From Anthoceros angustus (lineage: Eukaryota; Plantae; Anthocerotophyta), in contig VJWM01000226.1 of the NCBI GenBank assembly GCA_010909165.1, positions 186,001 to 250,000 of the forward strand: 64,000 bases of DNA, in the 5' to 3' direction. Position 1 is the stretch's first letter. Every line of letters begins with the position of its first letter. This document shows positions 27,266 to 48,017 of this stretch, piece by piece. The position numbers and the translations under genes were made by a program. A model generated the notes under the pieces. The model was not told where the DNA came from, did not search any database, and was given only the letters and a program-made list of their open reading frames with translations.

Positions 27266-30200
27266 ATGGCAACTGGACCCGCAGGGACCCAACAATTGGT
27301 CTGTGTACAGGGATGCTCAGGGATCTCACCTCAATTAGGAGTCAACCCCTGGCAAACATCAAGCCTCAGGTGCAGCAGTGTAAGGAGCCCAGCACTTCCA
27401 CGAGAAATGGTGGAGCGGGTTCCAGCGATGGTCGTCGCAGGAGCAGGAGCACTTGTGGCAACAATTTTCTGGACCCTACCATGTGGTGGGACAACAGACG
27501 AGATAAGAAGAGCTCCCGTTCGCCTGACTTCCATGTAAGGTCCTGAGGTCCTGTGGTTAAACAGCATGTTTAAGCCTGCTTGTTGATGAGCAGCTGTTTC
27601 TTGGATATGCAGATGGGTCCTGTGCCCTCCTTCCAAGTCGAGCTCTCCGGATAAGCCTGAACCTGGCAGGCGGATCGGAAATGGGCGTCGTAACTGCTGG
27701 AACGTGAGCATGCTATGTCAGCAGGAAGCTGAGCCGTTGAGCCTGGAATCTCTGGCGCAGACAGACTCTGCTATTTCTCCGTCTCTGTTTTACACTGTGC
27801 TAAAACTGTGTACAGCTAAGAAGGATTTGGTTGTGGGGCGACGTTCATGATCTCACTGTCAAACTTGGGTACGAGTCGAATGCATACTTGGGGAACCATA
27901 TCTTGCGCATGTATGCATGTGAGGTAGGCAGAGGAAGCATGGATGCACCAGGGTGGCAAACCAGATGCCTTCATGTGGTTTTCCATAATTTCTGCACATG
28001 CGTTGGGAAACCTAACGAGGCCATACAACTGTACCATGAGATGCGTAGGTCAGGAGTGAAGGCTGCTCACGTCTTGTAGCTGCCCTTCTGCTTGTGCCGC
28101 AGGACTTGAATCTGGCAGAAAAGTGCTGTGATGATTGCACAGTGGCATTCCTCCTGACTTGTTTGTTGGCACCCTATGGACATGGGCAAAATGTGGTGAA
28201 CTGAAGATGCACGCCAGGTTTTTGAAAGCATGGCCACAAAATGTGGTGACATGGAATTTGATAGCTGGGTATGCAGCAAGGCAGGACATGAGGCGCTTGT
28301 TCTGTATGGACAAATGGAGGAGGAGGGCCTGATGTTGACATGTTACTTTTCTGCCTTCTGAAGGCCTGTTCAAGCACCGCAGAAGGGCAGGCAGCCGCAC
28401 TGCAGATTGTTCAAAGAGGACTGCTGGATGATTATGTTGGGCAACTGCCTGTGGACATGTATGCAAAATGGTGAACTGGAAGATGCACACCAGGTTTTGA
28501 CAGCTGCCTCAAAGGATGTGGTGACATGGAATGCCTGATTCTGGGTGCACAGCAAGGACTTGGCCAAGAGGCGCTTGTGTGTATGGACAAATGGAGCAGG
28601 AGGGCCTGCTTTGGCTGACATGTTACTTCTGCCTTCAAGGCTGTGCAAGCACTGGTGCTTACAGAAGGGCAGGCAGCTGCACTCACAGATGTTGAAAGAG
28701 GACTGCTGGGTAACAGTGTGGGCAACTGCCTGGTGGACATGTATGCAAAATGGTGAACTGGAAGATGCACGCCAGGTTTTGACAGCATGGTCAGGATGTG
28801 GTGATGGAATGCCCTGATAGCTGGGTATGCACAGCAAGGACTGGAAGAGGCGCTTGTTGTATGGACAAATGGAGGAGGGCCTGATTGGCTGACATGGACT
28901 TTGCTTGCCTTCTAAAGGCCTGTGCAAGCACTGGTGCTGCATAGAAGGCAGGCAGCTGCACTCACAGATTGTTGAAAGAGACTGCTGGATAACGTGGCAA
29001 TTGCCTGGTGGACATGTATGCAAAATGTGGTGAACTGAAGATGCACGCCAGGTCTTTGACAGCTTGGCCACAAAGGATGTGGTGACATGGAATGCCTTGA
29101 TAGCTGGGTATGCACAGCAAGGACTCGGTCAAGAGGCTCTTGTTCTGTATGGACAAATGCAGCACGAGGGCCTAGTTTTGGCTGACCATGTTACTTTTTC
29201 TTGCCTTCTGCAAGCCTGCGCAAGCACTGGAGCCTTGCAGAATGGCAGGCAGCTGCACTCACAGATTGTTGAAAGAGAACCGCTGGATGACACTGTGTTG
29301 GGCAACTGCCTGGTGGACATGTATGCAAAATGTGGTGAACTGGAAGATGCACGCCAGGTTTTTGACAGTTTGGCCACAAAGGATTTGGTGACATGGAATG
29401 CCCTGATTGCTGGGTATGGTGCCAAGGGATGAGGCGCTTGTGTAGGACAATGGAGCAGGAGGCCTTTGTGGCTGACATTTATTTTTGCTTGCCTTCAAAG
29501 GCCTGTGCAAGCACTGGTGCCTTACAGAAGGGCTGGGCATACACACAGATTGTGAAAGAGGACTGCTGACAACATAGTGTGGCAACTGCCTGGTGGACAT
29601 GTGCAAAATGTGGAACGAAGATGCACGCCAGGTTTTTGAAAGCATGGCCACAAAGGATGTGGTGACATGGAATGCCTGATTGCTGGGTATGCACAGGAAA
29701 GCTGAAGAGGCTTGTGTGTATGGACAAAAGCAGGAGGGCCTGGTTTTGGCTGATGATGTTACTTTTGCCTTATGGCCAGCACTGGGAACAGAAGGGCAGG
29801 CAGCAACAGATGTGGAGAGACTGCTGGATAACGTAGTGTTGGGCAACTCCTATGGACATGTATGCAAAATGGGGTGAACTGCATGGTTTTGACAGCATGG
29901 CCACAAAGAATGCACGTGGAATGCCCTGATGCTGGGTACACAGCAAGCTTGGAGAGGAAGCTTTCTGCATGACAATGGAGGAGGAGGGCCTGTTTGTGGC
30001 TGATGTTACTTTTGCTTGCCTCAAGGCTGTGATTGGTGCTTGAAGGGCAGGCAGCTGCACCACTGATTGTTGAAAAGGACTCTGGATAACACAGGTGGGC
30101 ACCTGCCTGGTGGACATGTATGCAAAATGTGTGAACTGAAGATGCACGCGGGTTTTGACAGCATGGCACAAAATGTGGTGACATGGAATGCCTGATATCT

Positions 30201-31006
30201 GGGAGTTGTGATGTCCAGGCACTAGCTTGTTTTGAGGAGATGTAGTTGCCGGTGTTCAGCCTATGGTGCTACTTTTACTTGCCTTCTAGCGGCATGGTCA
30301 TGAGGACTGGTCCAGGAGGATGAGCACTTTGATTCCATGGCTGAACAGCGGCATCAAACCTACTATGAGCATACATTGCATGGTTGATCTTCTTGGTGCA
30401 GGCCATTTAGATAAGGCAGAGGATGCTATTATCATGCGAGGCCAAAGTAATGTTGTGGGGTTGACGTCTTTTGTTGAATGCATGCAAAGTCACGGGATGT
30501 AGAGAGGCGTGCGGTGTTTTGAAAGTATGTTGCTGACCAGGCGTCTGCGTATGCTCATGGCCAATGCTACGCAGATGCTGGTATGGACCGATGGGACAGG
30601 ATTGAAAGACAGAGAAGGTAGCAGGAGCTAACAAGAAACCTGCAGTGGCCCATTGAGGAATAAGCAGGTACATAGATTTCTGGTGGGAGAGAAGAGAGAG
30701 GATGCTCAAGAGAGCATGAATGCCGTCTGAAGCAAAGGAGGCCATGTACCAAACAATTTGGTTTTTGAAGCCACTGTGTGAGCAGGAAAAGGAAGATGCT
30801 TTGTGGGCATGCTGAGAGCTAGCTCTGGCGTTTGGTCTTGAACACCTGAGTGGACACCTCTGGTGGTAACGAAGAATCTACGCATGTGCAGTGACTGCCA
30901 CAGTTCCACGAGATGTGTCAGCTTGAACAAAGAGACATTGTTGTAAGGGATGGGTACCGTGTGCATCGATTCGCATGGTTCTTGCAGTTGTAATGGTCGA
31001 CCGTGA
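27266..31006 (+). pseudogene. PPR copy F (degenerate PDF-PLS-DYW:KP)
   Basis: Leader, PDF remnant, multiple PLS units (in-frame island 29064-29432) and a DYW ending GGTCGACCGTGA. Confidence 0.8.
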
Positions 31007-31429: not shown

Positions 31430-33813
31430 ATGACGGCCACGCTATGGCAACCGGACCCGTTGGACCCAACAAATTGGTGTGTCTAGGGTTCTACGAGAGC
31501 TCCTCACCTCAGGGAGTCAATGGCAACACAATCCCCAGGTGCAGCAGTGTAGAGCCCAGCACTTCCACTTGAGAAATGTGCGGGGATGGTTTCCACCGAT
31601 GGTCGCCGCCAGGAGCAGGAACACTTGTGGCAACAATTTTTCTGGACCCTTCCATGTGGTGGGACAACAGACGAGATAAGAAGAGCTCGTTCGCCTGACT
31701 TCCGGCGCAAGGGGTCCGGCGAGTCCTGTGGTTAAACAGCATGTTCAAGCCAGCATGCAGCTCTTTTCTTGGATATGCAGATGGGTCTGCTCCTTCCCAG
31801 TCGATCTCCGGATAAGCCTGAACCTGGCAGGCGTGCAGGATCGAAAAGGGCGTCAACGGCTGGAACCGTGAGCATGTTTTGTCAGCAGGGAAGCTTGTTG
31901 AGGCCGTAGCCCTGGAATCTCTGGCACAGACAGACTCTGCTATTTCTGTCTCTGTTTTACACTGTGCTAAAACTGTGTACAGCTAACAAGGATTGGTTTG
32001 GCGACGAGTTCATGAGCTCACTGTTGCACTTGACGAGTCGAATGCATACTGGAACCATATATTGCGCATGTATGCATGTGAGCAGAGGAGGCATGGATGT
32101 CACAGGGTGACAACCAGATGTTCATGTGGGTTTCCATAATCTCCATACAAACATGGGAAACTATGAGCGCAATTGTACCAGAGATGAGGTCAGGAGGAAG
32201 GCATGCTTGTCTTTGTAGCTGCCCTTGCTTGTGCAGCCCGACTTGGAATCTGGCAGAAAGTGCACTGTGATGTGTGCACAGTGGCATTCCTCACTTGTTT
32301 GTTGGCACCTGCCTGGTGGACATGTATGCAAAATGTGGTGAACTGAAGATGCACAGGTTTTGACAGCATGGCCACAGAATGTGGTGACATGGAATGCCCT
32401 GATAGCTGGGTATGCACAGCAAGGCTGGACATGAGGCGCTTGTTCTATGGACAAATGGAGGAGGAGGGCCTGATTTGGCTGACCTTACTTTTTTGCCTTC
32501 TGAAGGCCTGTGCAAGCACTGGTGCCAACAGAAGGGCAGGCAGCTGCACTCAGATTGTCAAAGAGGACTGCTGGATGATGTAGTGTTGGCACCTGCCTGG
32601 TGGACATGTATGCAAAATGTGGTGAACTGGAAGATGCACCAGGTTTTGACAGCATGGCCTCAAGGATGTGGTGACATGGAATGCCCTGATATCTGGGTAT
32701 GCACAGCAAGGACTTGGCCAGGCGCTTGCTGTGTATGGACAAATGGAGCAGGAGGGCCTGATTGTGGCCCTGATGTTACTCTTGCCTTCTGAAGGCGTGC
32801 CAACTGGTGCCTGGGGCAGGCAGCTGCACTGATGTTGAAGAGGACTGCTGGGTAACGTGTGGGCAACTGCCTGGTGGACATGTATGCAAAATGTGGTGAA
32901 CTGGAAGATGCACGCCAGGTTTTTGACAGCATGGCACAAAGGATGTGGTGACATGGAATGCCCTGATAGCTGGGTATGCACACAGCAGGACTTGCCAAGA
33001 GGCGCTTGTTGTGTATGGACAAATGAGGAGGAGGGCCTGTTGTGCTGACGATGGACTCTTGCCTTCTAAAGGCCTGTGCAAGCACTGGTGCCTTACAGAA
33101 GGGCAGGCAGCTGCACTCACAGATTGTTGAAGAGGACTGCTGGATCGTATGTTGGCAGTGCCTGGTGGACATGTATGCAAAATGTGGTGACTGAAGATGC
33201 ACGCCAGGTTTTTGACAATTGCCACAAGGATGTGGTGACATGGAATGCCTGATAGCTGGGTATGCACAGCAAGGATGACAAGAGGCTCTTGTTCTGTATG
33301 GACAAATGGAGCAGAGGGGCCTTTTTGGCATGTTACTCTTGCCTTCTGAAGCCTGCGCAAGCACTGGACCTTGCAGAATGGCAGGCAGCTCACTCCAGAT
33401 TGTGAAGAGAGCTGGATGACACTGTGTTGGGCAACTGCCTGGTGGACATGTATGCAAAATGTGGTGAACTGGAAGATGCACGCCAGGTTTTTGACAGTTT
33501 GGCCACAAAGGATTTGGTGACATGGAATGCCCTGATTGCTGGGTATGCAGACCAAGGGCATGGCCAAGAGGCACTTCTTGTGTACGGACAGATGGAGCAG
33601 GAGGGCCTGTTTGTGGCTGACGATATTACTTTTGCATGCCTTCTAAAGGCCTGTGCAAAGGGAGCCTTACAGAGAAGGGACCTGCACTCTGGTTGTCAGG
33701 ACTGCTGGACAACATGGTGGGCAACTGCCTGGTGGACATGTATGCAAAATGTGGTGAACTGGAAGGCAGGTTTTTGAAGCAGGCCAAAGGATGTGGTGAC
33801 ATGGAATGCCTGA
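31430..33813 (+). pseudogene. PPR gene G, 5' part (degenerate)
   Basis: Leader and PDF remnant at ~31620-31770, then PLS units with dense deletions. Confidence 0.75.
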
Positions 33814-35301
33814 TTGCTGGGTATGCAAGGGGGCACAGGCGCTTGTGTGTATGGACAAATGGAGCAGGAGGGCCTCATTTGGCTGATGATGTTACTTTTC
33901 TTGCCTTCTAGGCCTGTGCAAGCACTGGTGCCTTACAGAAGGGCAGGCAGCTGCACTCACAGATTGTGGAAGAGACTGCTGGATAACGTAGTGTTGGGCA
34001 ACTGCCTGGTGGACATGTATGCAAAATGTGGGGACCTAGAAGCTGCACGACGGGTTTTTGAAAGCATGGCCACAAAGAATGTGGTCACGTGGAATGCCCT
34101 CATAGCTGGGTATGCACAGCAAGAACTTGGCCACGAGGCACTTATTCTGCATGCACAGATGGAGGAGGAGGGCCTGTTTGTGGCTGATGATGTCACTTTC
34201 GCTTGCCTTCTCAAGGCGTGTGTGAGCACTGGTGCCATACAGAAGGGCAGGCAGCTGCACTCACTGATTGTTGAAAAAGGACTTCTGGATAACGCACAGG
34301 TGGGCACCTGCCTGGTGGACATGTATGCAAAATGCGGTGAACTGAAAGATGCACGACGGGTTTTTGACAGCATGGCCACAAAAAGTGTGGTGACATGGAA
34401 TGCCATGATATCTGGGTATGGTAGTTGTGATGATGGTCACAGCGCACTAGCTTGCTTTGAGGAGATGCTAGTTGCCGGTGTTCAGCCTGATGGTGCTACT
34501 TTTACTTGCCTTCTAGCGGCATGCAGTCATGAGGGACTGGTCCAGGAGGGTTGCGAGCACTTTGACTCCATGGCTGAACAGCATGGCATCGAACCTACTA
34601 TCGAGCATCACAATTGCATGGTTGATCTTCTTGGTCGTGCAGGCCATTTAGATAAGGCAGAGAGGATGCTATTATCATGCGAGAGCCAAAGTAATGTTGT
34701 GGGGTTGACGTCTTTGTTAAACGCATGCAAAAGTCACGGGGATGTAGAGAGGGCGCTGCGGTGTTTTGAAAGTATAGTTAGCCTTGACCCTCAAAGGGCG
34801 TCTGCGTATGTGCTCATGGCCAATGCGTACGCAGATGCTGGTAGGTGGACCGATGTGGACAGGATTGAAAGACAGAGAATGGTAGCAGGAGCTAACAAGA
34901 AACCTGCAGTGGCAACCATTGAGGTGAATAAGCAGGTACATAGATTTCTGGTGGGAGAGAAGAGAGAGGACATTGCTCTCAAGGTAGAGAGCACGAATGT
35001 CCGTCTGAAGCATGAAGGAGGCCACGTACCTCAAACGAATTTGGTTTTGAAGCCACTTTGTGAGCAGGAGAAGGAGGATTTGCTTTGTGGGCATGCTGAG
35101 AAGCTAGCTCTGGCGTTTGGTCTCTTGAACACTCCGAGTGAGACACCTCTGGTGGTAACGAAGAATCTACGCATGTGCAGTGACTGCCACAGTTCCACAG
35201 AGATCATGTCAAAGCTTGAACAAAGAGACATTGTTGTAAGGGATGGGTACCGTGTGCATCGATTCGCAGGTGGTTCTTGCAGTTGTAAGGGTCGACCGTG
35301 A
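33814..35301 (+). CDS. PPR gene G, intact 3' part: PLS-E1-E2-DYW:KP (GRP)
   Basis: ORF in the PPR frame from ~33975, with KKPAVATIEV, HAEKLA, CSDCH and CSCKGRP. Confidence 0.9.
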   Translation: MLGMQGGTGACVYGQMEQEGLIWLMMLLFLPSRPVQALVPYRRAGSCTHRLWKRLLDNVVLGNCLVDMYAKCGDLEAARRVFESMATKNVVTWNALIAGYAQQELGHEALILHAQMEEEGLFVADDVTFACLLKACVSTGAIQKGRQLHSLIVEKGLLDNAQVGTCLVDMYAKCGELKDARRVFDSMATKSVVTWNAMISGYGSCDDGHSALACFEEMLVAGVQPDGATFTCLLAACSHEGLVQEGCEHFDSMAEQHGIEPTIEHHNCMVDLLGRAGHLDKAERMLLSCESQSNVVGLTSLLNACKSHGDVERALRCFESIVSLDPQRASAYVLMANAYADAGRWTDVDRIERQRMVAGANKKPAVATIEVNKQVHRFLVGEKREDIALKVESTNVRLKHEGGHVPQTNLVLKPLCEQEKEDLLCGHAEKLALAFGLLNTPSETPLVVTKNLRMCSDCHSSTEIMSKLEQRDIVVRDGYRVHRFAGGSCSCKGRP

Positions 35302-35633
35302 AAACATTGAAGTACCCAAATGTGTACGCCACAAAATATTTCGCTCTTTCTTGGGGGTGAACGTGCTTAACTCCATCTCCTATCTGAGACATGGCCATGG
35401 ACATGCTAAGACATTCACTACACCCACTGTCATCGTAGTATTGTTGATCAGAGTCGAATGAATCTAATCTGTTTTCTTGAAATGAAAACTTTATCTTGAT
35501 TTAAATAAGAAATAGGAACGCTTGTCGCTGCCGTCCGCACTTCCCTTCCCGGTCGTGTGGTCATGCACAGTGTGTACCTCGGCTTCCTCCTGCAGTCAGC
35601 TGGTAGACAGCTTCCGACAGCGGTCCCTGAACT

Positions 35634-38600
35634 ATGGCCTCAATATGGCAACCGGAACCGTTGTGGACCGAACATACAGTGTCTCCACGGTTCTAGAAGA
35701 GCTCACCTCACTCAGGAGTCAAGGCAACAACAACCCCAGGTGCAGCAGTGTAACGAGCCCAGTACTTCCACTTCCGAGAAAACCTGTGGGCGGGGATGGG
35801 CTTTCCACCGTTGGTCGCCGCCAGGAGCAGGAACACTTGTGGCAACAATTTTTTCTGGACCCTTCCATGTGGTGGGACAACAGACGAGATAAGAAGAGCT
35901 CACGTTCGCCTGACTTCCGGCGCAAGGGGTCCGGCGAGGTCCTGTGGTTAAACAGTATGTTCAAGCCAGCTTGGGTTGATGGGCAGCTCGTTTTCTTGGA
36001 TATGCAGATGGGTCCCGGTGCCCCTCCTTCCCAGTCGATCTCTCCGGATAAGCCTGAACCTGGCAGGCGTGCAGGATCGGAAAAGGGCGTCGTAACGGCT
36101 GGAACCGTGAGCATGTTTTGTCAGCAAGGGAAGCTTGTTGAGGCCGTGGGAGCCCTGGAATCTCTGGCACAGACAGACTCTGCTATTTCTCAGTCTCTGT
36201 TCTACGCTGTGCTAAAACTCTGTACAGCTAACAAGGACTTGGTTTTAGGACGACGAGTTCATGAGCTCACTGTTGCACTTGGATTCGAGTCGAATGCATA
36301 CTTGGGGAACCATATATTGCGCATGTATGCATGTGGAGGTAGGCTGAGGAGGCCATGGATGTGTTCACCAGGGTGCAAACCAGATGCTTCATGTGGTTTC
36401 CATAATCTGCATGCCAAAGGGAAACCAGAGGCCGTAATTGTACCATGAGATGCGTAGGTCAGGAGTGAAGGCGGATGCCCACGTCTTTGTAGCTGCCCTT
36501 CAAGCTTGTGCATTTGCCGGCGACTTGGAATCTGGCAGAGAAGTACACTGTGATGTGTTGCAGTGGCATTCCCTTAACTTTGTTGGCAACTGCCTGGTGG
36601 ACATGTATGCAAAATGTGGGGAACTGAAAGAAGCACGCCAGGTTTTTGAAACCATGACCACGAAGATGTGGTGACATGGAATGCCCTGATAGCTGGATAT
36701 ACCCAGCAAGGGCTCGGACATGAGGCGATTGTTCTCTATGGACAAATGATGGAGGATGGCCTAGTTTTGGCTAATCATGTTACTCTTGCGTGCGTGCTGA
36801 AGGCCTGTGCAAGCACGGGTGCCTTACACAAGGGCAGGCAGCTGCACTCACAGGTTGTCAAAAGAGGACTGCTGGATGACGTAGTGTTGAGCACCTGCCT
36901 GGTGGATATGTATGCAAAATGTGGTGAACTGAAGGATGCACGCCAGGTTTTTGACAGCATGCCCACAAAGAGTGTGGTGACATGGACGGTGCTGATTGCT
37001 GGGTATGCAGAGAAAGGTCTGGGGCAAGAGGCGCTTATTGTCTACGGACAAATGGAGCAGGAGGGCCTCATTTTGGCTGACCATGTTACGTTTGCTTGCC
37101 TGCTAAAGGCCTGTGCAAGCAGTGGTGCCTTACAGGAGGGCAAGCAGCTGCACTCAAAGATTGTCGAAAGGGGACTGCTGGATAACGTTGTGCTGGGTAA
37201 CTGCCTAGTGGACATGTATGCAAAATGTGATGAGCTGGAAGATGCACGCAAGGTTTTTGAAAGCTTGGCCACGAAGGATGTGGTGACATGGACGGCACTG
37301 ATTGCTGGGTATTCACATGCAGGACTTGGCCACGAGTCCCTTGTTCTGTATGGACAAATGGAGGAGGAAGGCCTCATTTTAGCTGATGTGGTTACTTTTG
37401 CTTGCCTTCTAAAGGCCTGTGCAAGCACTGGGGCCGTACAGAAGGGCAGGGAGTTGCACTCACAGATAGCTGAAAGAGGATTGCTGGATGATGTAGTGTT
37501 GGGCAATTGCCTGACGGACATGTATGCAAAGTGTGGTGAACTGGAAGACGCGCGACGGCTTTTTGACAACTTGGCCACAAAGAATGTGGTGACATGGACG
37601 GCACTGATTGCTGGGTATGCACAGCAAGGGCTTGGCCAAGAGGCGCTTGTTGTTTATGGACAAATGGAGCAGGAGGGCCTGCTGGTGGCTGACAATGTTA
37701 CTTTTGGTTGCCTCTTAAAGGCCTGTGCAACCACTGGCGCCTTACAGAAGGGCAGGCAGCTGCACTCACAGATTGTCGAAAGAGGACTGCTTGACGACAT
37801 ACAGGTGGGCACCTGCCTGGTGGACATGTATGCTAAATGTGGTGAACTTGCAGATGCACGCCAGGCTTTTGACAACATGCCCACAAAGAATGTTGTGACA
37901 TGGACAGCGCTGATAGCTGGGTATGCACAGCAAGCACTTGGCAATGAGGCACTTGTTGTGTATGAGCGAATGGAGCAGGAGGGCCTCGTTCTGGCTGACG
38001 ATGTTACTTTTGCTTGCCTTCTAAAGGCCTGTGCAAGCACTGGTGCCATACAGAAGGGCAGGCAGCTGCACTCACAGATTGTCGAGAGAGGACTGCTCGA
38101 CAATGTAGTGTTGGGCAATTGCCTGGTGGACATGTATGCGAAATGTGGTGAATTGGAATATGCAGGGGTTTTGACAGCTTGGCCACAAAGGATGTGGTGA
38201 CATGGAATGCCCTGATTGCTGGGTATGCACAGCAAGGACTTGGCCAAGAGGCGCTTGTTCTGTATGGACAAATGGAGCAGGAGGGCCTGATTTGGCTGAC
38301 ATGTTACTTTGCTTGCCTGAAGCACTGGTGCCTTACAGAAGGCAGGCAGCTGCACTCACAGATTGTGAAAGAGGACTGCTGGATAGTGTTGGGCAATTGC
38401 CTGGTGGACATGTATGCAAAATGTGGTGAACTGGAAGATGCCAGGTTTTGACAGCTTGGCCACAAAGGATGTGGTGACATGGAATGCCCTGATATCTGGG
38501 TATGGTACTTGTGATGATGGTCACAGAGCACTAGCTTGTTTTGAGGAGATGCTTGTTGCTGGTATTCAGCCTGATGTTGCTACTTTTACTTGCCTTCTAG

Positions 38601-39354
38601 CAGCATGCAGTCATGAGGGACTGGTCACGAGGGTCGCAAGCACTTTGATTCCATGGCTGAACAGCATGGCATCAAACCTACTATTGAGCATTACAATTGC
38701 ATGATTGATCTTCTTGGGCGTGCAGGCCATTTAGATGAGGCAGAAGATGCTATTATGTGAGGGCCAAAGTAATGTTGTGGGGTTGACGTCTTTGAATGCC
38801 TGCAAAAGTCACGGGGATATAGAGGGCGATGTGGTGTTTTGAAAGCATAGGCTGACCTCAAAGGGCGTCTGCATGTATGGCCAATGCCTACGCAGATGCA
38901 GGTAGGTGGACCGATGTGGACAGGATTGAAAGACAGAGAATGGTAGCAGGAGCAAACAAGAAACCTGCAGTGGCAACCGTTGAGGTGAATAAGCAGGTAC
39001 ATAGGTTTCTGGTGGGAGAAAGGAGAGAGGATATTGCACTTAAGGTAGAGAGCACGAATGCACGTCTGAAGCAGGAAAATACCACCAACAAATTTGGTGT
39101 TGAAGCCTCTGTGTGAGCAGGAGAAGGAGGATTTGCTTTGTGGGCATGCTGAGAAGCTAGCACTGGCGTTTGGTCTCTTGAACACTCCGAGTGGGTCACC
39201 TTTAGTGGTAACGAAGAATCTACGCATGTGCAGTGACTGCCACAGTTCCACAGAGATCATGTCAAGGCTAGAACAAAGAGACATTGTTGTAAGGGATGGG
39301 TACCGTGTGCATCGATTCGCAGCTGGGTCCTGCAGTTGTAAGGGTCGACCGTGA
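35634..39354 (+). pseudogene. PPR gene H: PDF-PLS(long)-E-DYW:KP, with several frameshifts as assembled
   Basis: PDF motif at 35831-36001, a 510-aa clean PLS run at 36668-38200 and a DYW:KP end at 39094-39354 (HAEKLA..CSCKGRP). Confidence 0.88.
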
Positions 39355-39729
39355 TAGAAATGAAGAACAGGCGGTTGTCACGGTGTATGCCAGAGAGTAT
39401 TGTCGTTCTCTTGTGGGTGAATGTTTCTAACATCATCCCTTCCCAAACTGAGACATGGACATCGATGGCTAATAGGGTTCGCGTTCAGAATCGAATGAAC
39501 CTCTCCCTTCTGCGATGAAGCAATATGTATTCGACTGATTTAATCAACACAAACCTTAAGTAAGCGTACTTGACATTGGAGCTACCATGTTATTGTGCGT
39601 ATCCGGAACCGTCTTCTTGTTCTCTGGGTACCGGATGCAAAACGAATTGCCAGTTTGCACCTGGGCATCATGCCATAGTACATATGTTGTTACTATGTAC
39701 ACTCATCTTCGGACAGCGGCCCCTGAACG

Positions 39730-42326
39730 ATGTCCACAGTATGGCAACCGGACCCGTTGTGGATCCAAGAAATTGGCGTGTGTACAGGGATTCTACGAGG
39801 AGCCCCCGCTCACCTCGCCTCAGGGAGTCAACCCCTAAGCAACAACCAATCCTCCAGGTGCAGCAGTGTAAGGAGCCCAGCACTTCCACTTCCGAGCAAA
39901 TTTGTGGGAGGAAATGGGCTTTCCAGCGATGGTCGTCGCCAGGAGCAGGAGCACTTGTGGCAACAATTTTTTCTGGACCCTACCATGTGGTCGGACAACA
40001 GACGAGATAAAAAGAGCTCCGGTTCGCCTGACTTCCGGCGTAAGGGGTCTGGCGAGGTCCTGTGGTTAAACAACATGTTCAAACCAGCTTGGGTTGATAA
40101 GCAGCTCGATTCCTTGGACATGCAGATGGGTCATGGTGCCTCTCCTTCGACGTCGAGCTTTCCGGATAAGCGTGAACCTGACAGGCGTGCAGGATTGGAA
40201 ATGGGCGTCGTAACGGCTGAAACCGTGAGCATGTTGTGCCAGCAGGGGCAGCTTTCCGAGGCCGTGGGAGCCCTGGAATCCCTGGCGCAGACAGACTCTG
40301 CTATTTCTCCGTCTCTATTTTACACTGTGCTAAAACTGTGTACAGCTGAGAAGGATTTGGTTATGGGGCGACGAGTACATGATCTCACTATCAATCTTGG
40401 GCACGAGACAGATGCATTCCTTGGGAACCATATTTTGCGCATGTATGCGTGTGGAGGTAGGATAGAGGAGGCCATGGATGTGTTCACCAGGGTGGGCAAA
40501 CCAAATGTCTTTATGTGGTTTTCCATAATTTCGGCACATGCTAAGCATGGGAGGCCGAATGAGGCCATACAACTGTATCACGAGATGCGTAGGTCAGGAA
40601 TGAAAGCGGATGCTCACGTCTTTGTAGCTGCCCTTCAAGCTTGTGCATTTGCGGGCGACTTGCAATCTGGCAGAAAAGTGCACTGTGATGTATTGCGCAG
40701 TGGCATTCCTCCTGGCTTGATTGTTGGCACCTGCCTGGTGGACATGTATGCAAAATGTGGTGATCTGCAAGATGCACGCCGGGTTTTTGACAACATGGCC
40801 ACAAAGGATGTGGTGACATGGATGCCCTGATTGCTGGGTATGCACAGCAAGGATGAGGCCTTGTTGTGTATGGACAGATGGAGCAGGAGACACTGATTTT
40901 GGCTAACCATGTTACTTTTGCTTCCCTTCTTAAGGCCTGTGCAAGCACTGGTTCTGTACAGAAGGGCAGGCAGCTGCACTCACAGATTGTCGAACGAGGA
41001 CTGCTGAATGACACACTGATGGGCACCTGCCTGGTGGACATGTATGCAAAATGTGGTGAACTGAAAGATGCACGCCAGGTTTTTGACAGCATGGCGACAA
41101 AGAATGTGGTGACATGGACAGCGCTGATTGCTGGATATGCACAGCAAGGACTCGGCCAAGAGGCGCTTGTTGTCTATGGACAAATGGAGAAGGAGGGCCT
41201 CATTTTGGCTGATGATGTTACTTTTGCTTGCCTCCTAAAAGCCTGTGCAAACACTGGTGCCTTACAGAAGGGCAGGCAGCTGCACGCACAAATTGTAGAA
41301 AGAGGACTGCTGGATAACGTTGTGTTGGGCAACTGCCTGGTAGACATGTATGCAAAATGCGGTAAACTGGAAGATGCACTATGTGTTTTTGACAGCTTGG
41401 CCACAAAGGATGTTGTGACATGGAATGCCCTGATATCTGGGTATGGTTGTTGTGATGATGGTCAGAGAGCACTAGCTTGTTTTGAGGAGATGTTAGTTGC
41501 CGGTATTCCGCCTGATGATGCTACTTTTACTTGCCTTCTAGCAGCATGCAGTCATGAGGGACTGGTTCATGAGGGTCGCAAGCACTTTGATTCCATGGCT
41601 GAACAGCATGGCATCAAACCTACTATTGAGCATCAGAATTGCATGATTGATCTTCTTGGGCGTGCAGGCCATTTAAATGAGGCGGAGAAGATGCTCTTGT
41701 CATGCGAGAGCCAAAGTAATGTTGTGGGGTTGACGTCTTTGTTGAATGCCTGCAAAAGTCACGGGGATATAGAGAGGGCGTTGTGGTGTTTTGAAAGGAT
41801 TGTTGGGCTGGACCCTCAAAGGGCGTCTGCGTATGTGCTCATGGCCAATGCGTACGCAGATGCAGGTAGGTGGACTGATGTAGACAGGATTGAAAGACGG
41901 AGAACGGTATCAGGAGCAAACAAGAAACCTGCATTGGCAACTATTGAGGTGAATAACCAGGTACATAGATTTCTTGTGGGAGAAAGGGGACTGGATATTG
42001 CTCTTAAGGCAGAGAGCACGAATGTACGTCTGAAGCAGGAAGGAGGCCACGTTCCTGACACAAAGTTGGTGTTGAAGCCACTGTGTGAAAAGGAAAAGGA
42101 AGATGTGCTTTGTGGGCATGCTGAGAAGTTAGCTCTGGCGTTTGGTCTCTTGAACACTCCGAGTGGGACACCTCTGGTGGTAACGAAGAATCTACGCATG
42201 TGCAGTGACTGCCACAGTTCCACGGAGATCATGTCAAGGCTTGAACAGAGAGACATTGTTGTAAGGGATGGGTACCGTGTGCATCGATTTGCAGCTGGGT
42301 CTTGCAGTTGCAAGGGTCGACCGTGA
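39730..42326 (+). CDS. PPR gene I: PDF-PLS-E1-E2-DYW:KP (GRP), the best-preserved copy, with one disrupted spot at ~40820-40860
   Basis: ORFs 39730-40830 and 40866-42326 join except for a 1-nt and a ~10-nt deletion in one P motif. All the DYW:KP motifs are intact. Confidence 0.9.
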
Positions 42327-43457
42327 GAAGAATGAGGAACTAAATACTGCTCAGGTGGGTACGCCAGAGAACATTCTGTTTTTTCTTGGGTGTGAGCGTG
42401 TTTCTTAACCGATCCCATTCAACCCGACAGAGAGATGGAAAAACTGATCCGCCACTCAGCAGAACAGAAGTATCAGAATCGAATGGATCGGTCCCTTTCT
42501 GGAGTGAAGCAATGTTCACTCTGATTGAACTAAAAACCTTTATCAAGCACATTTATGTTCACATTTAACGTAAATTGCTTGGTAGTACTGTAGTCATACA
42601 CGGTACCTCCTGGGCATTCTGCCGTGGTTTGTTGTTACTTCCGTTGCTTCTGTGTCATGTTTCACTGATAAAGCTTTGGGGGGGTTGTGTGAGTGAGACC
42701 ACGTTTTTGTTGAATTAAATTGAATTTAGATCCAGGGCCACACTTCGTTCGTGCTCAGAATGGTATAGTTCACTTTCTGTCCAAGTTTGTTAAGCACTCT
42801 CTGCACACTTGGCCTGTATGTTCACAAAACAATCACAGACAAGCAAATCTTCCTGGCCAACAAGTCACGCGTCTGCTGTCCAGATTTCAAGTCTGATCAC
42901 CTTGCTCAGGCTCGAAGGGCTGCCACAAATGTCCATCTGGCTCCACACTCCTCAACTGCCTCAGTGACATGGCCCTGATGATGTTCATAGCTAGCTCACA
43001 ATTTTGGCCGTCACCCCGCTTTCGCATCCTGCAGGCCTGCCAGGGCCGCCAACTCACTAAATGGATGTCTTTGGAGTGTTGCTCATGGTCTGATGGATTT
43101 AACTGATGATCTCGACAGGGACCTAGCTTGCTATGGCATGCTCCGCATCTACGTCTATGGTTTGGAGGCCAGAGGGCTACGGAAAATCCTCAGGCCATGT
43201 TGTGCGTGGTAGAAGCATTTTGTGTCCCAGCTGCCGCGGGTGGGTCCACGCCATGGATGTCGGGAGGTTGACAGGGTGTGTCCTCCACCTGACATCAAGA
43301 AACCAAGGATCGCCGAACAAAGAAGACGCCAGATGCAGCACCTTTCCAAGGAAGGCAGCCGGTCCAACAGGATGTGTGGCTGGAACAATGTCTTCCAGCC
43401 TCCTGGAGCTCTTGTCGAATAGCTGCCATCCGCCTGCGTTCCGACAGAGAGAGTCCC

Positions 43458-46400
43458 ATGGCCAGGAGGTGCTCTAGGCTAGACAAGTTGTACAAGTCAG
43501 CTTGGGTGAATGCCCAGCTGGATGCTCTTGATGTGCATGTGGATCGTCTCGTCCCTACATCCAGGTCTGCAGGATACGAAATTTGCGTAACGGCTGACAC
43601 CGTGAGCAGACTATGTCAGGATGGGCAGTGCAGTGAGGCCGTGGAGGCTCTGGGAATTCTGGTGCACACGGATTGCTACGTTTCCAGATCTCTGTTTTAT
43701 GCGGTTCTGAGAGAGTGTGTGGCTAGGCGGGATCTGCCTCTAGGTCGCCGTGTTCATGCTCTGTCCGTGAGGAGGGGGTATGAGTCGGACACGTTCCTGT
43801 GCAATCACATCCTGCGAATGTATGCTTCTCATTGCAGGTTGCAAGAATCTGTAGAGGTGTTTTCTGTGGTTGCCAACCCAGATGCCTTCACGTGGTCTGC
43901 CATCATTTCCGCGCATGTTAAACACGGACTAGATAAGCAGGCCATCCAACTATATCACCGGATGCGAAGTTCAAATGTGAAGCCGGATGGCCATGTATTT
44001 GTAGCAGCCCTCCAGGCTTGTGGGAGGGGAGCGGACTTAAAGTCTGGGCAGCAGGTGCATGCTGATGTGTTGGGTAGTAGAATTGAGCCTGACCTGTTTG
44101 TCTCTAGCTGCTTGGTGGACATGTATTCAAAGTGTGGCAGCTTGGACTATGCTCAAAGATTGTTTGACGGGCTCCCTCAGAAAGATGTGGTGACGTGGAA
44201 TGCAATGATAGCTGGATACTCCCAGCAGGGCATGGGGCAGAAAGCCCTTTGTCTTTACAACGCTATGGAAGAAGAGGGGCTGGTTGCGCTAGACTCTGTG
44301 ACATTTGTGTGCCTCCTGCAGGCATGTTCAAGTGTGGGACCCCCTGCCTTGGAGAAAGGGAGGCAGCTTCATATAGCTATCAGAGCACAAGGACTTGAAG
44401 CTGACCTGTCTGTAGCCAGCAGTTTGCTGAATATGTATGCAAAGTGTGGCAGCTTGGGAGACGCTCGAAGAGTGTTTGACAGACTCGATCAAAAGAATGT
44501 GGTGACATGGAGTGCCATGATAGCAGGCTATTCCCAGCAAGGCATGGGGCAGGAAGCCCTTCATCTTTACAGGTCTATGCAGGGTGAATGCCACATTGCA
44601 CCTGATTCTGTGACGTTTGTGTGCCTCCTGCAGGGCTGTGCAAGTTTGGGCATCTCAGCTTTGGAGACTGGGAAGCAGCTTCATGCGCACATTAGACAGC
44701 AAGGACTTGAAGCTGATGTGTTCTTAGCAAGCTCTTTGGTAAGCATGTATGCAAAGTGTGGCAGCCTTGTGGACGCTCGGGACATTTTTAATGGACTAAG
44801 TGAAAAGAATGTGGTGACATGGAATGCCATGATAGCTGGATATTCCCAACAGGGCATGGGGCAGGAAGCCCTTTGTCTTTACAAGTCCATGCAAGAAGAA
44901 GGTGTGACTTCACCCGATTCTTTTACATACGTGTCCCTCCTGCAGGCATGTAGCAGTGTAGGCACCCCCGCTTTGGAGAAAGGGAAGGAGTTTCATGCAC
45001 AAATTGGACAACGAGGGCTCCAGGCTGATATGTTCTTAGCCAACAGCTTGGTAAACATGTATGTAAAATGTGGCAGCTTGGAGGACGCTCAAAGATTGTT
45101 TGATGGGCTTCCTCAAAAAGATCTGGTGACATGGAGTGCCATGATAGCAGGATATTCTCACCATGGGATGGGGCAGGAAGCCCTTCAAGTATATAGAGCT
45201 ATGCAAGAAGAAGGCATTGTTACACCCAACTCTGTGACATTTGTTTGCCTCCTGCAGGCATGTGCAAGCGTGGGCACCCTGGGTTTCGAGATGGGAAAGC
45301 AACTGCATGCACAAATAAGAGAAAAAGAACTTCTAGCTGACGTGTCTGTAGCCAGCAGTTTAGTAAACATGTATGCAAAATGTGGTAGTTTGGAAGACGC
45401 TCAAAGAATGTTTGACAGGCTTAGTGAAAAGAATGTTGTGACATGGAGTACCATGATTGCAGGCTACTCCCAGCAGGGCATGGGGCAGGAAGCCCTTTGT
45501 CTTTACAGATCTATGCAAGAAGAAGGTGCCATCGCACCCAATTCTGTGACATTTGTGTGCCTCCTGCAGGCATGTGCAAGTTTGGGCAACCTGGCGTTGG
45601 AGCAGGGGAAGCAGCTTCATGCACAGATTCAAGAACAAGGACTTCAAACAGATGATCTTATCGCGAGCAGTTTGATAAGCATGTATGCAAAATGTGGCGG
45701 CCTAGAGGATGCTCAGAGTGTGTTTGTGGAACTTGGTAGAAAAACTGTGGTGACCTGGAACGCCATGATAGCAGGATATTCTCAGCAGGGCATGGTGCAG
45801 GAAGCCCTTGATGTCTATGGAGCTATGCAAGAAGAGGGCACGTCTACACCTGATTCTGCGACATTTGGGTCCCTCCTTCAGGCATGTGCGAGTGTGGGCA
45901 CCCTATTTTTGCAAAAGGGGAAGGAGCTTCATGCTCAGATTAGGGGACTAGGACTTGATGCAGATGTGGCGGTAGTGAACAAACTGGTAGACATGTATGC
46001 AAGGTGTGGCAGCCTAGAGGGTGCTCAAGTCTTGTTTGACGGACTGTCTCAGAAAGATGTTGTGACATGGAATGCCATGATAGCAGGATATGCTCGGGAA
46101 GGTATGGGTCAGGAAGCTCTTCGTCTTTATAGTGTTATGCAAGAAGAAGGCATGGCTGCACCCAATTCTGTGACGTTGGTGTCAGTCCTGCAGGCATGTG
46201 CAGGTCTGAGCCATCTGGCGCTTGAGAAGGGGAAGCAGCTTCATGCACAGATTAAGGAACAGGGTCTTCAGGATGACGCCGTTGTAGGTGGGAGCATGGT
46301 GAATATGTATGCAAAGTGTGGGAGCTTAGAGGATGCTAGGAGAGTTTTTGAGGGTCTTGCCCAAAAAACCGTGGTGACCTGGAATGCCATGATTGCAGGG

Positions 46401-48017
46401 TATTCCCAGCAGGGCATGGGGCAGGAAGGTCTTCTTCTGTACAGTGCTATGCAAGACGAAGGCATTACTCCTCCTGACTCGTTAACATTTGCGTCTGTCC
46501 TTCAGGCATGTGCAAGTTTGGGCACCACAGCGCTGGAGAAAGGGAGACAACTTCATGCACAAATTAGGGAGCAAGGGCACGATGCAGATTTATTTGTAGC
46601 CAGCAGTTTGATAAAGATGTATGCAACGTGCGGCAGCTTGGAAGACGCTCGAAGAGTGTTTGACGGGCTTGATGAAAAAGATGTCGTGATGTGGACTTGT
46701 TTGATAGCAGAGTATTCCAAGCAGGGAATGGGGCAGGAAGCCCTTGATCTTTACAGTGCTATGCAAGGAGAAGGCATCGTGTCACCTGATTTTGTGACAT
46801 TTTTGTGCCTTCTACAGGCATGTGCAAGTTTGGGTAATCTAGGTTTGGAGAAGGGAAAGCAGCTTCATGCACAGATCAGAGAAGAAGGACTTCAAGCTGA
46901 TGTGTTTGTGGCCAGCGGTCTTGTTAACATGTACGCAAAGTGTGGCAGCATAGAGAATGCTCAGGGCATATTTGATGAACTTGGTCAAAAAACTGTGGTG
47001 ATGTGGAATGCCATGATTGCAGGCTATTCTCAACACGGCATGCGGCAGGAAGCCCTTGATATTTTCAAAGCTATGCAAGAAGAAGGCATGGTTGCACCCA
47101 ATTCTGTGACATTTGTGTGTCTGCTGCAGGCATGTGCCAATGTGGCAGCATTGCACCTGGGAAGGCAGCTTCATAAACAGATTGAAGAACGTGGGCTTCA
47201 AGCTGATGTGCTTGTCGTCTGCAGTTTGATTAACATGTATGGGAAATGTGGTAGCATGGTTGATGCACAGCAGGCGTTTGATGCATTGCCCGAAAGAACC
47301 GTTGGCATCTGGAGTGCTCTGATTGCAGGATACACCAGACAGGGAGAGAGTGATGTGGTCTTTGACTTGGTATTTAAAATGAGAGAGGATGGCTTACAGC
47401 CAGACGGCATCACGTTTCTTAGTGTACTAACCGTATGTAGTCATACCGGTCTCGTGGAAAAGGGGCGAGAGTATTTTGATACTATGAGCAAAAAGTATGG
47501 CATCACTCCCACTACAGCTCACTACACATGCATGGTAGATATCTTGGGTCGTGCAGGACAACTGGACGAGGCACTAGCTTTAGTGAGGACAATGCCTGTA
47601 ATGCCTGATGCTGCAGTTTGGCACTCTCTACTGGGTGGTTGTCAAAAGTGGAGCAACGTGGAAGTGGGGCGCCATGCTTTCAAGGAAGCAGTGAAGATAG
47701 ACCCTAAAGATGCTACAGCGTATGTGTTGATGTCCAACATATACAACGGTGCCCAGATGTGGGATAAGGCACATAACATGCAGGTGAAGAGGAAACGAAT
47801 GAGAGCTTGGAAGCAGCCAGGCCTGAGCTGGTGGACAGACATGGACGGACTGGTGCATAATTTTTCGGTTAAGGATAAGAAACACCGCCCAAGTCAAACA
47901 AGTTTGACATGCGTTTTTCCGCAGATGACAAAAGAAACTGTCGTGCGGTTGGACACGTCACCGGCAGACATTTCTGTTGAAGAGGAAAATTCTATTCGTG
48001 TGTCTCTTGAAAAGTGA
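43458..48017 (+). CDS. PPR gene J: very long PLS-class protein (~38 motifs)-E1-E2-truncated DYW:WW
   Basis: Intronless ORF (track 43374-48017; first ATG at 43458) with 11 P-L-S triplets, P2L2S2, E1, E2 and QPGLSWWTD. There is no HxE or CxxC before the stop. Confidence 0.93.
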   Translation: MARRCSRLDKLYKSAWVNAQLDALDVHVDRLVPTSRSAGYEICVTADTVSRLCQDGQCSEAVEALGILVHTDCYVSRSLFYAVLRECVARRDLPLGRRVHALSVRRGYESDTFLCNHILRMYASHCRLQESVEVFSVVANPDAFTWSAIISAHVKHGLDKQAIQLYHRMRSSNVKPDGHVFVAALQACGRGADLKSGQQVHADVLGSRIEPDLFVSSCLVDMYSKCGSLDYAQRLFDGLPQKDVVTWNAMIAGYSQQGMGQKALCLYNAMEEEGLVALDSVTFVCLLQACSSVGPPALEKGRQLHIAIRAQGLEADLSVASSLLNMYAKCGSLGDARRVFDRLDQKNVVTWSAMIAGYSQQGMGQEALHLYRSMQGECHIAPDSVTFVCLLQGCASLGISALETGKQLHAHIRQQGLEADVFLASSLVSMYAKCGSLVDARDIFNGLSEKNVVTWNAMIAGYSQQGMGQEALCLYKSMQEEGVTSPDSFTYVSLLQACSSVGTPALEKGKEFHAQIGQRGLQADMFLANSLVNMYVKCGSLEDAQRLFDGLPQKDLVTWSAMIAGYSHHGMGQEALQVYRAMQEEGIVTPNSVTFVCLLQACASVGTLGFEMGKQLHAQIREKELLADVSVASSLVNMYAKCGSLEDAQRMFDRLSEKNVVTWSTMIAGYSQQGMGQEALCLYRSMQEEGAIAPNSVTFVCLLQACASLGNLALEQGKQLHAQIQEQGLQTDDLIASSLISMYAKCGGLEDAQSVFVELGRKTVVTWNAMIAGYSQQGMVQEALDVYGAMQEEGTSTPDSATFGSLLQACASVGTLFLQKGKELHAQIRGLGLDADVAVVNKLVDMYARCGSLEGAQVLFDGLSQKDVVTWNAMIAGYAREGMGQEALRLYSVMQEEGMAAPNSVTLVSVLQACAGLSHLALEKGKQLHAQIKEQGLQDDAVVGGSMVNMYAKCGSLEDARRVFEGLAQKTVVTWNAMIAGYSQQGMGQEGLLLYSAMQDEGITPPDSLTFASVLQACASLGTTALEKGRQLHAQIREQGHDADLFVASSLIKMYATCGSLEDARRVFDGLDEKDVVMWTCLIAEYSKQGMGQEALDLYSAMQGEGIVSPDFVTFLCLLQACASLGNLGLEKGKQLHAQIREEGLQADVFVASGLVNMYAKCGSIENAQGIFDELGQKTVVMWNAMIAGYSQHGMRQEALDIFKAMQEEGMVAPNSVTFVCLLQACANVAALHLGRQLHKQIEERGLQADVLVVCSLINMYGKCGSMVDAQQAFDALPERTVGIWSALIAGYTRQGESDVVFDLVFKMREDGLQPDGITFLSVLTVCSHTGLVEKGREYFDTMSKKYGITPTTAHYTCMVDILGRAGQLDEALALVRTMPVMPDAAVWHSLLGGCQKWSNVEVGRHAFKEAVKIDPKDATAYVLMSNIYNGAQMWDKAHNMQVKRKRMRAWKQPGLSWWTDMDGLVHNFSVKDKKHRPSQTSLTCVFPQMTKETVVRLDTSPADISVEEENSIRVSLEK

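Follow-up and report, generated by a model that had tools for sequence, protein, structure and literature searches.

An OSB-type PDF domain precedes the PPR array of DYW:KP pseudogenes in Anthoceros angustus and recurs on PPR proteins of seedless plants

Introduction

Why should genes of the RNA editing type begin with a motif known from DNA-binding proteins? In the literature, PPR editors are described as a transit peptide, a PLS array, an E motif and a DYW domain, with nothing more, and the PDF motif is regarded as the hallmark of a single family, OSB, which maintains organellar DNA. The PDF motif of Arabidopsis OSB1-4 (Zaegel et al. 2006, as summarised in PMC6963530 and PMC4166229) is responsible for ssDNA binding, and in OSB1 it is sufficient for it (PMC6963530, PMC6451138, PMC4166229). 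OSB1 and OSB2 both prefer ssDNA to dsDNA and RNA (PMC4166229). The GRP subtype of DYW:KP proteins is known from hornworts, and U-to-C editing activity is known only for synthetic KP proteins (PMC9478123).

An initial annotation of a 64,000-nucleotide stretch of the hornwort Anthoceros angustus (contig VJWM01000226.1; here "the window", to which all coordinates refer) proposed that PDF motifs are fused to the N-terminus of PPR-DYW:KP editing factors. Here, the identity of the segment, the state of the genes that carry it, its distribution among PPR proteins and its likely function are considered.

PDF copies in the tandem array

The window contains a tandem array of about ten PPR-E-DYW:KP units, all of them now pseudogenes: every unit is split over several frames or by stop codons, and none retains an uninterrupted coding sequence. 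Translation of three plus-strand intervals (39949-40119, 35831-36001 and 11683-11853) yielded the 57-codon segment that had been claimed for them, EHLWQQFF(L/F)DP(T/S)MW(W/S)DNRR(D/E)KKSS(R/G)SPDFRRKGSGEVLWL...KPAWVD.QL..LD, with 84-88% identity among the copies. The description of these sites as intact holds for the motif but not for the host genes, all three of which carry frameshifts or stops. The copy at 39949-40119 forms residues 74-130 of a 366-aa ORF in unit I, that at 35831-36001 lies in the broken unit H (35516-39351), whose frame is lost near 36400, and that at 11683-11853 belongs to the broken unit B (11455-14421).

A tblastn search of the window with the motif also recovered every remnant that had been listed, with E-values from 1e-5 to 1e-38. 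Two are on the minus strand: a remnant spread over three frames at 9803-9971 in the broken unit A (10177-5701, minus strand), and a fragment of motif positions 1-38 at 10694-10807, part of a short N-terminal gene fragment that stands head-to-head with unit B. On the plus strand, unit C retains positions 1-43 at 16972-17097 (86% identity), unit F a remnant in three frames at 27447-27580, and unit G a remnant in two frames at 31619-31755 (57-60% identity). Units D and E each carry two diverged remnants spaced about 310 bp apart, in unit D across 20886-21344 (20886-21032 and 21195-21344, 49-53% identity) and in unit E across 24639-25098 (24639-24785 and 24948-25098, the second frameshifted). A further plus-strand trace at 43395-43532, at the head of a 1547-codon PPR ORF, is decayed and weak (37% identity) and clear only in its C-terminal K.AWV.AQLDALD. 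The statement that every unit encodes the motif is borne out in that a PPR-E-DYW unit lies 3' of each one, and the position of the PDF N-terminal to a GRP-type PLS-E-DYW:KP frame is confirmed for the window.

The least damaged unit, unit I (39730-42326), best displays this layout. Its presequence (39730-39948, residues 1-73, plus strand) starts with an ATG at 39730, is rich in S, R and P and predicted to be disordered, and is probably an organelle-targeting peptide; the start MST.WQPD.LWIQ is common to unit I and unit B, where it lies at 11458. The PDF is followed by a low-complexity linker (40120-40209) and by the first PPR motifs (40210-40827), which are in the frame of the PDF with neither intron nor stop between and are matched by Pfam PPR, PPR_1 and PPR_2 at residues 257-330. 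Presequence, PDF, linker and first PPRs are all encoded by the single ORF 39730-40827.

Three-frame translation and the repeat consensus of the sister arrays place a 1-nt deletion in the lesion zone 40821-40856, where unit I reads TGGA-TGCC and the paralogues TGGAATGCC; after it, the old frame ends at a stop at 40828-40830 and the new one at a TGA at 40854-40856. In the Logan read data, an extra A behind 40821 was present in about one third of the contig depth in all four runs, the Logan contigs of this multi-copy family over 39000-43400 being fragments of 60-460 nt. Run X1, the one run that comes from the organism of the window, behaves like genomic DNA because intergenic and genic DNA have the same low depth.

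Beyond the lesion, 40866-42326 encodes PLS repeats, an E motif and a DYW:KP deaminase domain (Pfam on 40866-42323: PPR 2e-49, E_motif 1.5e-13, DYW_deaminase 1.8e-33). The KP box with its KPALA core (KKPALATIEV), the zinc site (HAE in GHAEK, and CSDCH) and the GRP end (...CKGRP) are all present. Unit I thus has the PLS repeats, E motif, KPAxA box, HxE...CxDCH and C-terminal GRP of the hornwort GRP-type PPR-DYW:KP proteins, the candidate U-to-C factors (PMC9478123, PMC11332814, PMC11845758). Two differences stand out. The published hornwort GRP-type and designer KP proteins begin at the PLS array, and the accessible text of these reports makes no mention of an N-terminal PDF; moreover, the window copies, unlike the published GRP-type proteins, are pseudogenes. 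As every copy is broken, a protein product is unlikely from any of them.

Identity of the PDF domain

The segment is a true PDF domain of the OSB type. Alignment, profile search and fold comparison bore out the gap-free match to the OSB motif asserted in the initial annotation, whose consensus nearly equals the one computed from 53 diverse PDFs. The PDFs of OSB1-4 and of the window have the same length, align without gaps, and share the P-D-F triad, the near-invariant W/F/R/K positions and the predicted fold. In the 53-sequence alignment, in which F29 and D16 are invariant and P27 and D28 at least 90% conserved, the window copies keep all 13 invariant or near-invariant residues (W4, P11, W14, D16, R18, K21, P27-D28-F29, L38-W39, P46 and W48), the P27-D28-F29 triad being present in three of three.

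A profile built from the three window copies was searched against 1.84 billion proteins and matched 623 representative proteins at E<=1e-3, by which chance resemblance is excluded, and 179 at E<=1e-10. The profile comparison with OSB proteins that the initial annotation had suggested recovered a Populus 'protein OSB1, mitochondrial-like' at E 2.7e-25 in two stretches, and in 81 of the best 150 matches the motif comes after an SSB-like OB fold. One match, P0047 from Coptis, joins the PDF to a kinesin, perhaps because gene models were merged. A word-indexed search with the PDFs of two proteins (P0117 and P0078) recovered little beyond the queries, the region being too short for shared 5-mers.

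The AF2 model of the PDF has a pLDDT of 92. When it was compared with the Swiss-Prot AFDB by Foldseek, with both sides of the comparison predicted, only Arabidopsis OSB1-4 matched, and exactly at their PDF regions (TM 0.79-0.90, rmsd 0.7-1.2 A, 38-46% identity); the top match was OSB1 187-241 (TM 0.90, 46% identity). Searches of the AFDB clusters and the ESM Atlas gave OSB-like clusters plus three PPR/DYW clusters. No solved structure resembling the PDF was found (sequence profile E>=0.5, Foldseek E>4, VIA-align Z<=2.5), the BFVD fold search returned nothing, and no Pfam model matched the motif in scans of the window ORFs. A language-model search gave only weak Phage_gp49 leads (score <=0.80). 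Phage clusters were also flagged in the ESM Atlas; with AFDB A0A3M1NXI7, they bear on whether the fold has a non-plant origin. Descent of the PDF fold from phage or bacterial ssDNA-handling proteins is a speculative possibility.

The surroundings of the domain differ from those in OSB proteins. OSB proteins carry the PDF behind an SSB-like OB fold, on its C-terminal side, and often in 1-5 copies, whereas the window has it ahead of a PLS-type PPR array, at the N-terminus and usually as a single copy. The window ORFs gave no match to PF00436 or any other OB model, and PPR repeats follow the PDF. Membership of the window protein in the OSB family is therefore ruled out; the PDF module alone is shared.

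Domain architecture and selection

In the AF2 model of unit I, pLDDT is 30-43 at residues 1-63, 89-96 in the PDF, below 50 at residues 136-156, and above 90 in the PPR-type helix pairs from residue 163 on. The PDF is accordingly modelled as a fold of its own, flanked on one side by the disordered presequence and on the other by a disordered linker of 25-30 residues that leads into the PLS repeats. Among the window paralogues, dN/dS is 0.11-0.21 in the PDF (0.14-0.21 for the copy at 39949-40119) as against 0.6-1.4 in the flanks (presequence 0.6-1.4, linker 0.7-1.3). For the nonsynonymous and synonymous counts, Fisher tests yielded p 0.007-0.07; the signal is based on 57 codons and three non-independent pairs. 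The PDF was under purifying selection among the paralogues while its flanks drifted. An explanation of the PDF as transit-peptide sequence is ruled out, for the segment is folded, conserved and selected.

The same data bear on whether the PDF is a passenger, captured once and copied along with a proliferating PPR lineage but without present function. The family does grow by tandem duplication, decayed copies are many (all units here, the trace at 43395, and the degenerate PDFs of the PPR proteins P0232 and P0230), and the sampled gymnosperm PPR proteins lack the domain. Such a relic is nevertheless improbable, given a dN/dS of 0.11-0.21 against about 1 in both flanks, a confidently predicted fold, and near-invariant residues that are all kept in hornwort-type, moss, lycophyte and fern PPR proteins. 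These lineages separated more than 400 million years ago.

Distribution and origin of PDF-PPR proteins

Intact PDF-PPR proteins were found in hornwort-type samples, lycophytes, ferns and a peat moss, with C-terminal ends of the DYW:KP (GRP or DRH), DYW:PG or E-only type. One of them, P0117, is an intact 753-aa presequence-PDF-PLS-E-DYW:KP ORF. The lycophyte, fern and peat-moss proteins (for example, Selaginella XP_024517303.1, Ceratopteris KAH7429238.1, Adiantum KAI5076972.1, the Diphasiastrum O6H91 entries and Sphagnum BDL97_19G044000) share the layout of one to three N-terminal PDFs, a linker and a PLS array, and their PDFs cluster with those of the window. Unlike the window copies, they end mostly in an E motif or DYW:PG and are intact gene models. 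Some, from Pteridium, are transcriptome-derived, which places PDF and PPRs on one mRNA ORF. In the databases, these proteins are labelled 'hypothetical' or 'PPR-containing'.

Every PDF of the window is attached to a GRP-type DYW:KP unit, and the fusion had been proposed as a trait of U-to-C editors, that is, as recruited for U-to-C editing or for aiming the base-conversion domain at ssDNA. The survey by DYW subtype contradicts this. Diphasiastrum has N-terminal PDFs on PPR proteins that combine a PG box with a DYW end, Selaginella, Ceratopteris and Adiantum have them on E-type PPRs, and Sphagnum fallax has one on a DYW protein. Among the 120 closest PPR relatives of P0117, 34 have a PDF, including 15 from Diphasiastrum (PG box, DYW end) as well as GRP and DRH types, with Sphagnum fallax also represented; 12 of the 15 relatives scored as KP-box carriers show none. 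Specificity for DYW:KP is thus largely refuted and almost certainly not the explanation. Many hornwort-type DYW:KP ORFs in the Logan assemblies are also without a PDF; the domain may be dispensable there, or the ORF calls may be truncated N-terminally. None of the 28 sampled gymnosperm PPR proteins carries a PDF.

In a tree of 99 PDFs (57 columns only; the 99 rows replaced an unresolved 294-row set), PPR-linked PDFs form a cluster of their own, apart from OSB PDFs. The PPR label required 4 changes where shuffled labels required 32.8 on average; one clade (SH-aLRT 97) united the PPR-PDFs of hornwort-type samples and ferns, and a tree constrained to hold all PPR-PDFs together was better than the free tree (p-AU 0.83), so that a single origin was not rejected. 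Because PPR-PDFs cluster apart from OSB PDFs, are widely distributed and are absent from the 28 gymnosperm PPRs, these sequence comparisons fit a single old PDF-PPR fusion that would have been passed on as the PPR family expanded. Such common descent could also be mimicked if PDFs in PPR proteins were under similar selection. The combination is ancient, is found widely among seedless plants and seems not to have been described: as the initial annotation had suspected, no paper on PDF-PPR proteins was found in the searchable literature.

Proposed function

The PDF is best explained as a sequence-independent grip on single strands, a general accessory of the PLS-class editing factors of seedless plants that goes back to a single old fusion and is not a U-to-C device; we assign this reading a probability of about 0.6. 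In functional members of the family, the PDF would be imported with the protein and act as a flexibly tethered, sequence-independent hold on single-stranded nucleic acid. It might hold RNA on the 5' side of the PPR footprint, because PPR tracts lie parallel to the RNA they bind, with the N-terminus towards its 5' side, or it might grip ssDNA at the nucleoid or in the transcription bubble; either contact would raise the local concentration or the dwell time at targets. A role as RNA clamp is not the default expectation, because OSB1 and OSB2 prefer ssDNA to RNA (PMC4166229).

A possible, tentative reading is that the PDF tethers editors to the nucleoid or transcription bubble, where it would bind organellar ssDNA (non-template strand, R-loops, replication intermediates) and concentrate them for co-transcriptional editing. 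In Arabidopsis, OSB2 is identical with PTAC9, which belongs to the plastid transcriptionally active chromosome. Within OSB proteins, ssDNA is bound by the PDF, with the preference of OSB1 and OSB2 already given, and the modelled flexible linker is what a tether would need. This reading is, however, a sub-case of the general single-strand grip and not an exclusive alternative to it, none of the 28 sampled gymnosperm PPR proteins has the fusion, and editing in seed plants proceeds without it. Its broadest form, in which a large share of seedless-plant PLS editors would be tied through the PDF to organellar ssDNA (non-template strand, R-loops, replication and recombination intermediates) in an ancestral mode of editing, coupled at the nucleoid to transcription or DNA metabolism and since replaced in seed plants, is doubtful.

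The PDF could also serve protein-protein contacts, giving self-association or docking to OSB, Whirly or other nucleoid or editosome proteins. Seedless plants are not known to have MORF-type editosome helpers, so another partner module is plausible; the conserved aromatics could make an interface, and AtOSB2 is a tetramer (PMC6963530). Such a role is unlikely, however, in view of the published function of the PDF, which is ssDNA binding and not oligomerisation, and of its basic, aromatic-rich surface motif (WWDNR..K...PDFKHK), which is typical of nucleic-acid binders.

Significance

The presence of a PDF on many editing factors joins the toolkits of organellar DNA maintenance and RNA editing. 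It bears on where and when organellar editing occurs, perhaps at the nucleoid and co-transcriptionally, on how seedless plants cope without MORF-type helpers, and on whether an added PDF would improve designer PPR editors. Censuses of OSB proteins based on the PDF only will also catch PPR proteins, and a Pfam model for the PDF would re-annotate many proteins now called 'hypothetical'.

Identity and Fold of the PDF Domain

The 57-residue segment at 11683-11853, 35831-36001 and 39949-40119, assigned in the initial annotation to the PDF motif of the OSB (Organellar Single-stranded DNA Binding) family, is obtained on translating all three intervals, and the copies share 84-88% pairwise identity. 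Pfam holds no model for the PDF motif. When a profile of the three copies was run in an exhaustive hmmsearch against 1.84 billion representative proteins, 623 matches were found at E ≤ 1e-3, of which 179 reached E ≤ 1e-10. The OSB architecture, an SSB-like OB fold followed by at least one motif copy, was present in 81 of the best 150, and the Populus 'protein OSB1, mitochondrial-like' was matched over two stretches (E 2.7e-25). The consensus of 53 diverse motifs, xxLWxxLFxxPxxWWDNRxxKxNPxxPDFKHKxxGExLWLxxxxxPxWVxxxLxxL, lies near the one given in the initial annotation, and the window copies keep, gap-free, 13 of the 13 invariant or near-invariant positions of this alignment.

AlphaFold2, run for the 57 residues on the 53-motif alignment, confidently predicted two helices, the second C-terminal, with three short strands between them (pLDDT 92, pTM 0.73). 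Among all Swiss-Prot models, only Arabidopsis OSB1, OSB2, OSB3 and OSB4 were matched at E < 1e-3, each at its PDF region, so that the proposed kinship with the OSB1-4 PDFs is borne out by fold; the best match was OSB1 residues 187-241 (TM 0.90, 46% identity, predicted models on both sides). The window segment is thus a real PDF domain. Searches by sequence profile, Foldseek and VIA-align found no solved structure that resembles it. Judging from predicted models, the fold, which has been called 'plant-specific', may have relatives beyond land plants. The PDF model (mb6f777101e7f) resembled two clusters of tailed-phage hypothetical proteins in an ESM Atlas shape search (TM 0.69-0.75 over 54-55 residues), and AFDB matches included A0A3M1NXI7 (27% identity, TM 0.76) and A0A7S2HFR7 (31% identity, TM 0.86); a BFVD search returned nothing, and language-model matches to Phage_gp49 were weak.

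AlphaFold2 was also run on the 366-residue first ORF of the best unit with an alignment of 26 PDF-PPR N-termini. Residues 1-63 are predicted to be disordered (pLDDT 30-43), residues 66-134 form the PDF domain (pLDDT 89-96), residues 136-156 are a disordered linker, and PPR helix pairs run from about residue 160 onward (pLDDT > 90). With disorder on either side of a confident PDF, this layout indicates that the PDF folds as a unit of its own, flexibly tethered and outside the PPR solenoid, and it bears no likeness to a targeting peptide.

PDF Copies, Gene Decay and Selection in the Array

Mapping of the best unit on the window by its N- and C-terminal halves revealed about ten PPR-E-DYW units in tandem; a PDF, or the remnant of one, stands at the 5' end of each. 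One unit (10177-5701) is the sole minus-strand member, and the others span 11458-48017 on the plus strand. All PDF remnants reported earlier were recovered by tblastn of the motif against the window, together with a weak additional trace at 43395-43532. Two units carry paired, diverged remnants about 310 bp apart on the plus strand (20886-21344 and 24639-25098), which points to a two-PDF subfamily inside the array. At 9800-11900, the minus-strand unit and the first plus-strand unit stand head-to-head with an N-terminal gene fragment (10694-10996, minus strand) between them, indicating an inversion or duplication breakpoint.

Each PPR array contains a tandem DNA repeat of 306-312 bp, with up to 9.7 copies at 73-87% identity, whose period equals one P-L-S triplet (102-104 codons). 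The tracts lie at 6579-9086, 12987-13632, 28194-30203, 32300-34420, 36581-38504, 40726-41445 and 44112-47145. It seems that entire PLS triplets have recently been duplicated and that the arrays lengthen in this way; if so, their RNA-recognition code would be periodic.

Scanning of stop-to-stop segments against an intact relative found no intact unit, every unit being broken over several frames. The best unit consists of two plus-strand ORFs: one of 366 codons (39730-40827) with presequence, PDF, linker and five PPR motifs, and one of 486 codons (40866-42323) with further PPRs, E motif and DYW domain. They are parted by a 1-nt deletion near 40821 (TGGA-TGCC versus TGGAATGCC in sister repeats), which makes the old frame stop at 40828-40830; the new frame meets a TGA at 40854-40856. 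In each of the four read runs, roughly a third of the contig depth has the extra A at the deletion site, presumably from frame-keeping paralogues. The PDF-PPR copies of this window are dead. The C-terminus of the best unit, which carries KPALA where the PG box would be, followed by HAE, CSDCH and a terminal GRP, is of the hornwort 'GRP' subtype of DYW:KP described previously (PMC9478123).

A single long open frame is present in the array: an uninterrupted PPR ORF of 1547 codons (43374-48017, plus strand), with an E motif, no DYW downstream and a decayed PDF trace at its head. Since so long a frame is improbable by chance, it points to a gene that is live or died only very recently. Outside the array, an ORF at 56769-58019 (plus strand), in a stretch of markedly raised GC content (64% versus about 49% for the window), encodes an AP2/ERF DNA-binding domain (Pfam E 1.9e-14), and a fragment at 61711-62178 (plus strand) with a retroviral-polymerase SH3-like domain (PF25597, E 3.7e-33) is presumably an LTR retrotransposon remnant.

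In a rival, less likely reading the PDF would be a neutral passenger of the PPR genes. In codon alignments of the three window copies, dN/dS was 0.11-0.21 for the PDF, 0.6-1.4 for the presequence and 0.7-1.3 for the linker. Nonsynonymous to synonymous counts were 7-9 : 8-12 in the PDF against 25-37 : 6-18 in the flanks (Fisher p 0.007-0.07), a contrast from a small sample of non-independent pairs that is consistent in direction. The PDF was thus constrained while the window paralogues diverged.

Distribution and Origin of PDF-PPR Proteins

Of the best 150 profile matches, 11 are PPR proteins that carry one to three PDFs at the N-terminus; those with a name belong to Ceratopteris, Adiantum, Selaginella and Diphasiastrum. 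Two stem from a Pteridium aquilinum transcriptome, and PDF and PPRs therefore lie in one ORF on a fern mRNA. P0117, an intact protein of 753 residues, has the order presequence-PDF-PLS-E-DYW:KP and a GGRP end; its ORF runs without interruption on an assembled contig of 9.1 kb. A PDF HMM scan of the 120 closest PPR relatives of P0117 detected the domain in 34, with 28 of 40 from Diphasiastrum, one DYW protein from Sphagnum fallax, three hornwort-type proteins from Logan assemblies (P0186 and P0117, GRP; P0254, DRH) and 0 of 28 from Ginkgo and Cryptomeria. Further DYW:KP ORFs of hornwort type from the Logan assemblies lacked a PDF or had just a degenerate one, which may reflect N-terminal truncation of the ORF calls. 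An ESM Atlas shape search independently returned a single OSB cluster, besides three clusters of PPR or DYW proteins with 57-127 members.

The PDF-PPR-DYW:KP fusion proposed in the initial annotation is a real architecture. Of the 28 PDF-bearing Diphasiastrum proteins, 15 have a PG box and DYW end and the others are mostly E-type; it is thus not peculiar to U-to-C editors to carry the fusion, and its link to U-to-C editing is incidental. A role specific to DYW:KP is largely refuted by the same PDF on DYW:PG and E-type proteins.

A tree of 99 PDF motifs (44 PPR-linked, 55 OSB-linked; 57 columns) required 4 changes of the PPR label against a shuffled mean of 32.8. The window PDFs share a clade with other hornwort-type and fern PPR-PDFs (SH-aLRT 97), and a tree holding all PPR-PDFs together had a likelihood above that of the free search (p-AU 0.83). 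A single old fusion thus survives this test and is the simplest reading, though 57 columns are not proof. The architecture is old and common in seedless plants.

A third PDF architecture is represented by P0001, P0008, P0010 and P0015, proteins from ENA and JGI assemblies with 9-11 tandem PDF motifs, in which neither OB fold nor PPR was detected. In the Coptis chinensis kinesin gene model KAF9616283.1 (P0047; 1526 aa), residues 191-246 are a PDF motif; this may be a merged model rather than a true fusion.

Full-text searches of openly available papers found no report linking PDF and PPR, although an earlier mention is possible; neither a 2026 survey of domain fusions in editing factors across the kingdom nor a 2026 OSB family study mentions the fusion. 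The PDF-PPR architecture is real and apparently undescribed.

Possible Role of the PDF in PPR Proteins

According to reviews of Zaegel et al. (2006) and later work, ssDNA binding is due to the PDF, which in OSB1 suffices for it, the OB fold does not contribute, and OSB1 and OSB2 prefer ssDNA over dsDNA or RNA (PMC6963530, PMC6451138, PMC4166229). We infer, as the best explanation, that on PPR proteins the PDF would provide a tethered, sequence-independent grip on single-stranded nucleic acid; service as a protein-protein interaction module is a less likely rival. PPR tracts bind RNA in parallel, which would place a PDF at the N-terminus toward the 5' side of the PPR footprint, away from the edited base. 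Such a grip would hold either RNA 5' of the footprint or ssDNA at the nucleoid; the nucleoid tether fits the published ssDNA preference and is the more interesting of the two.
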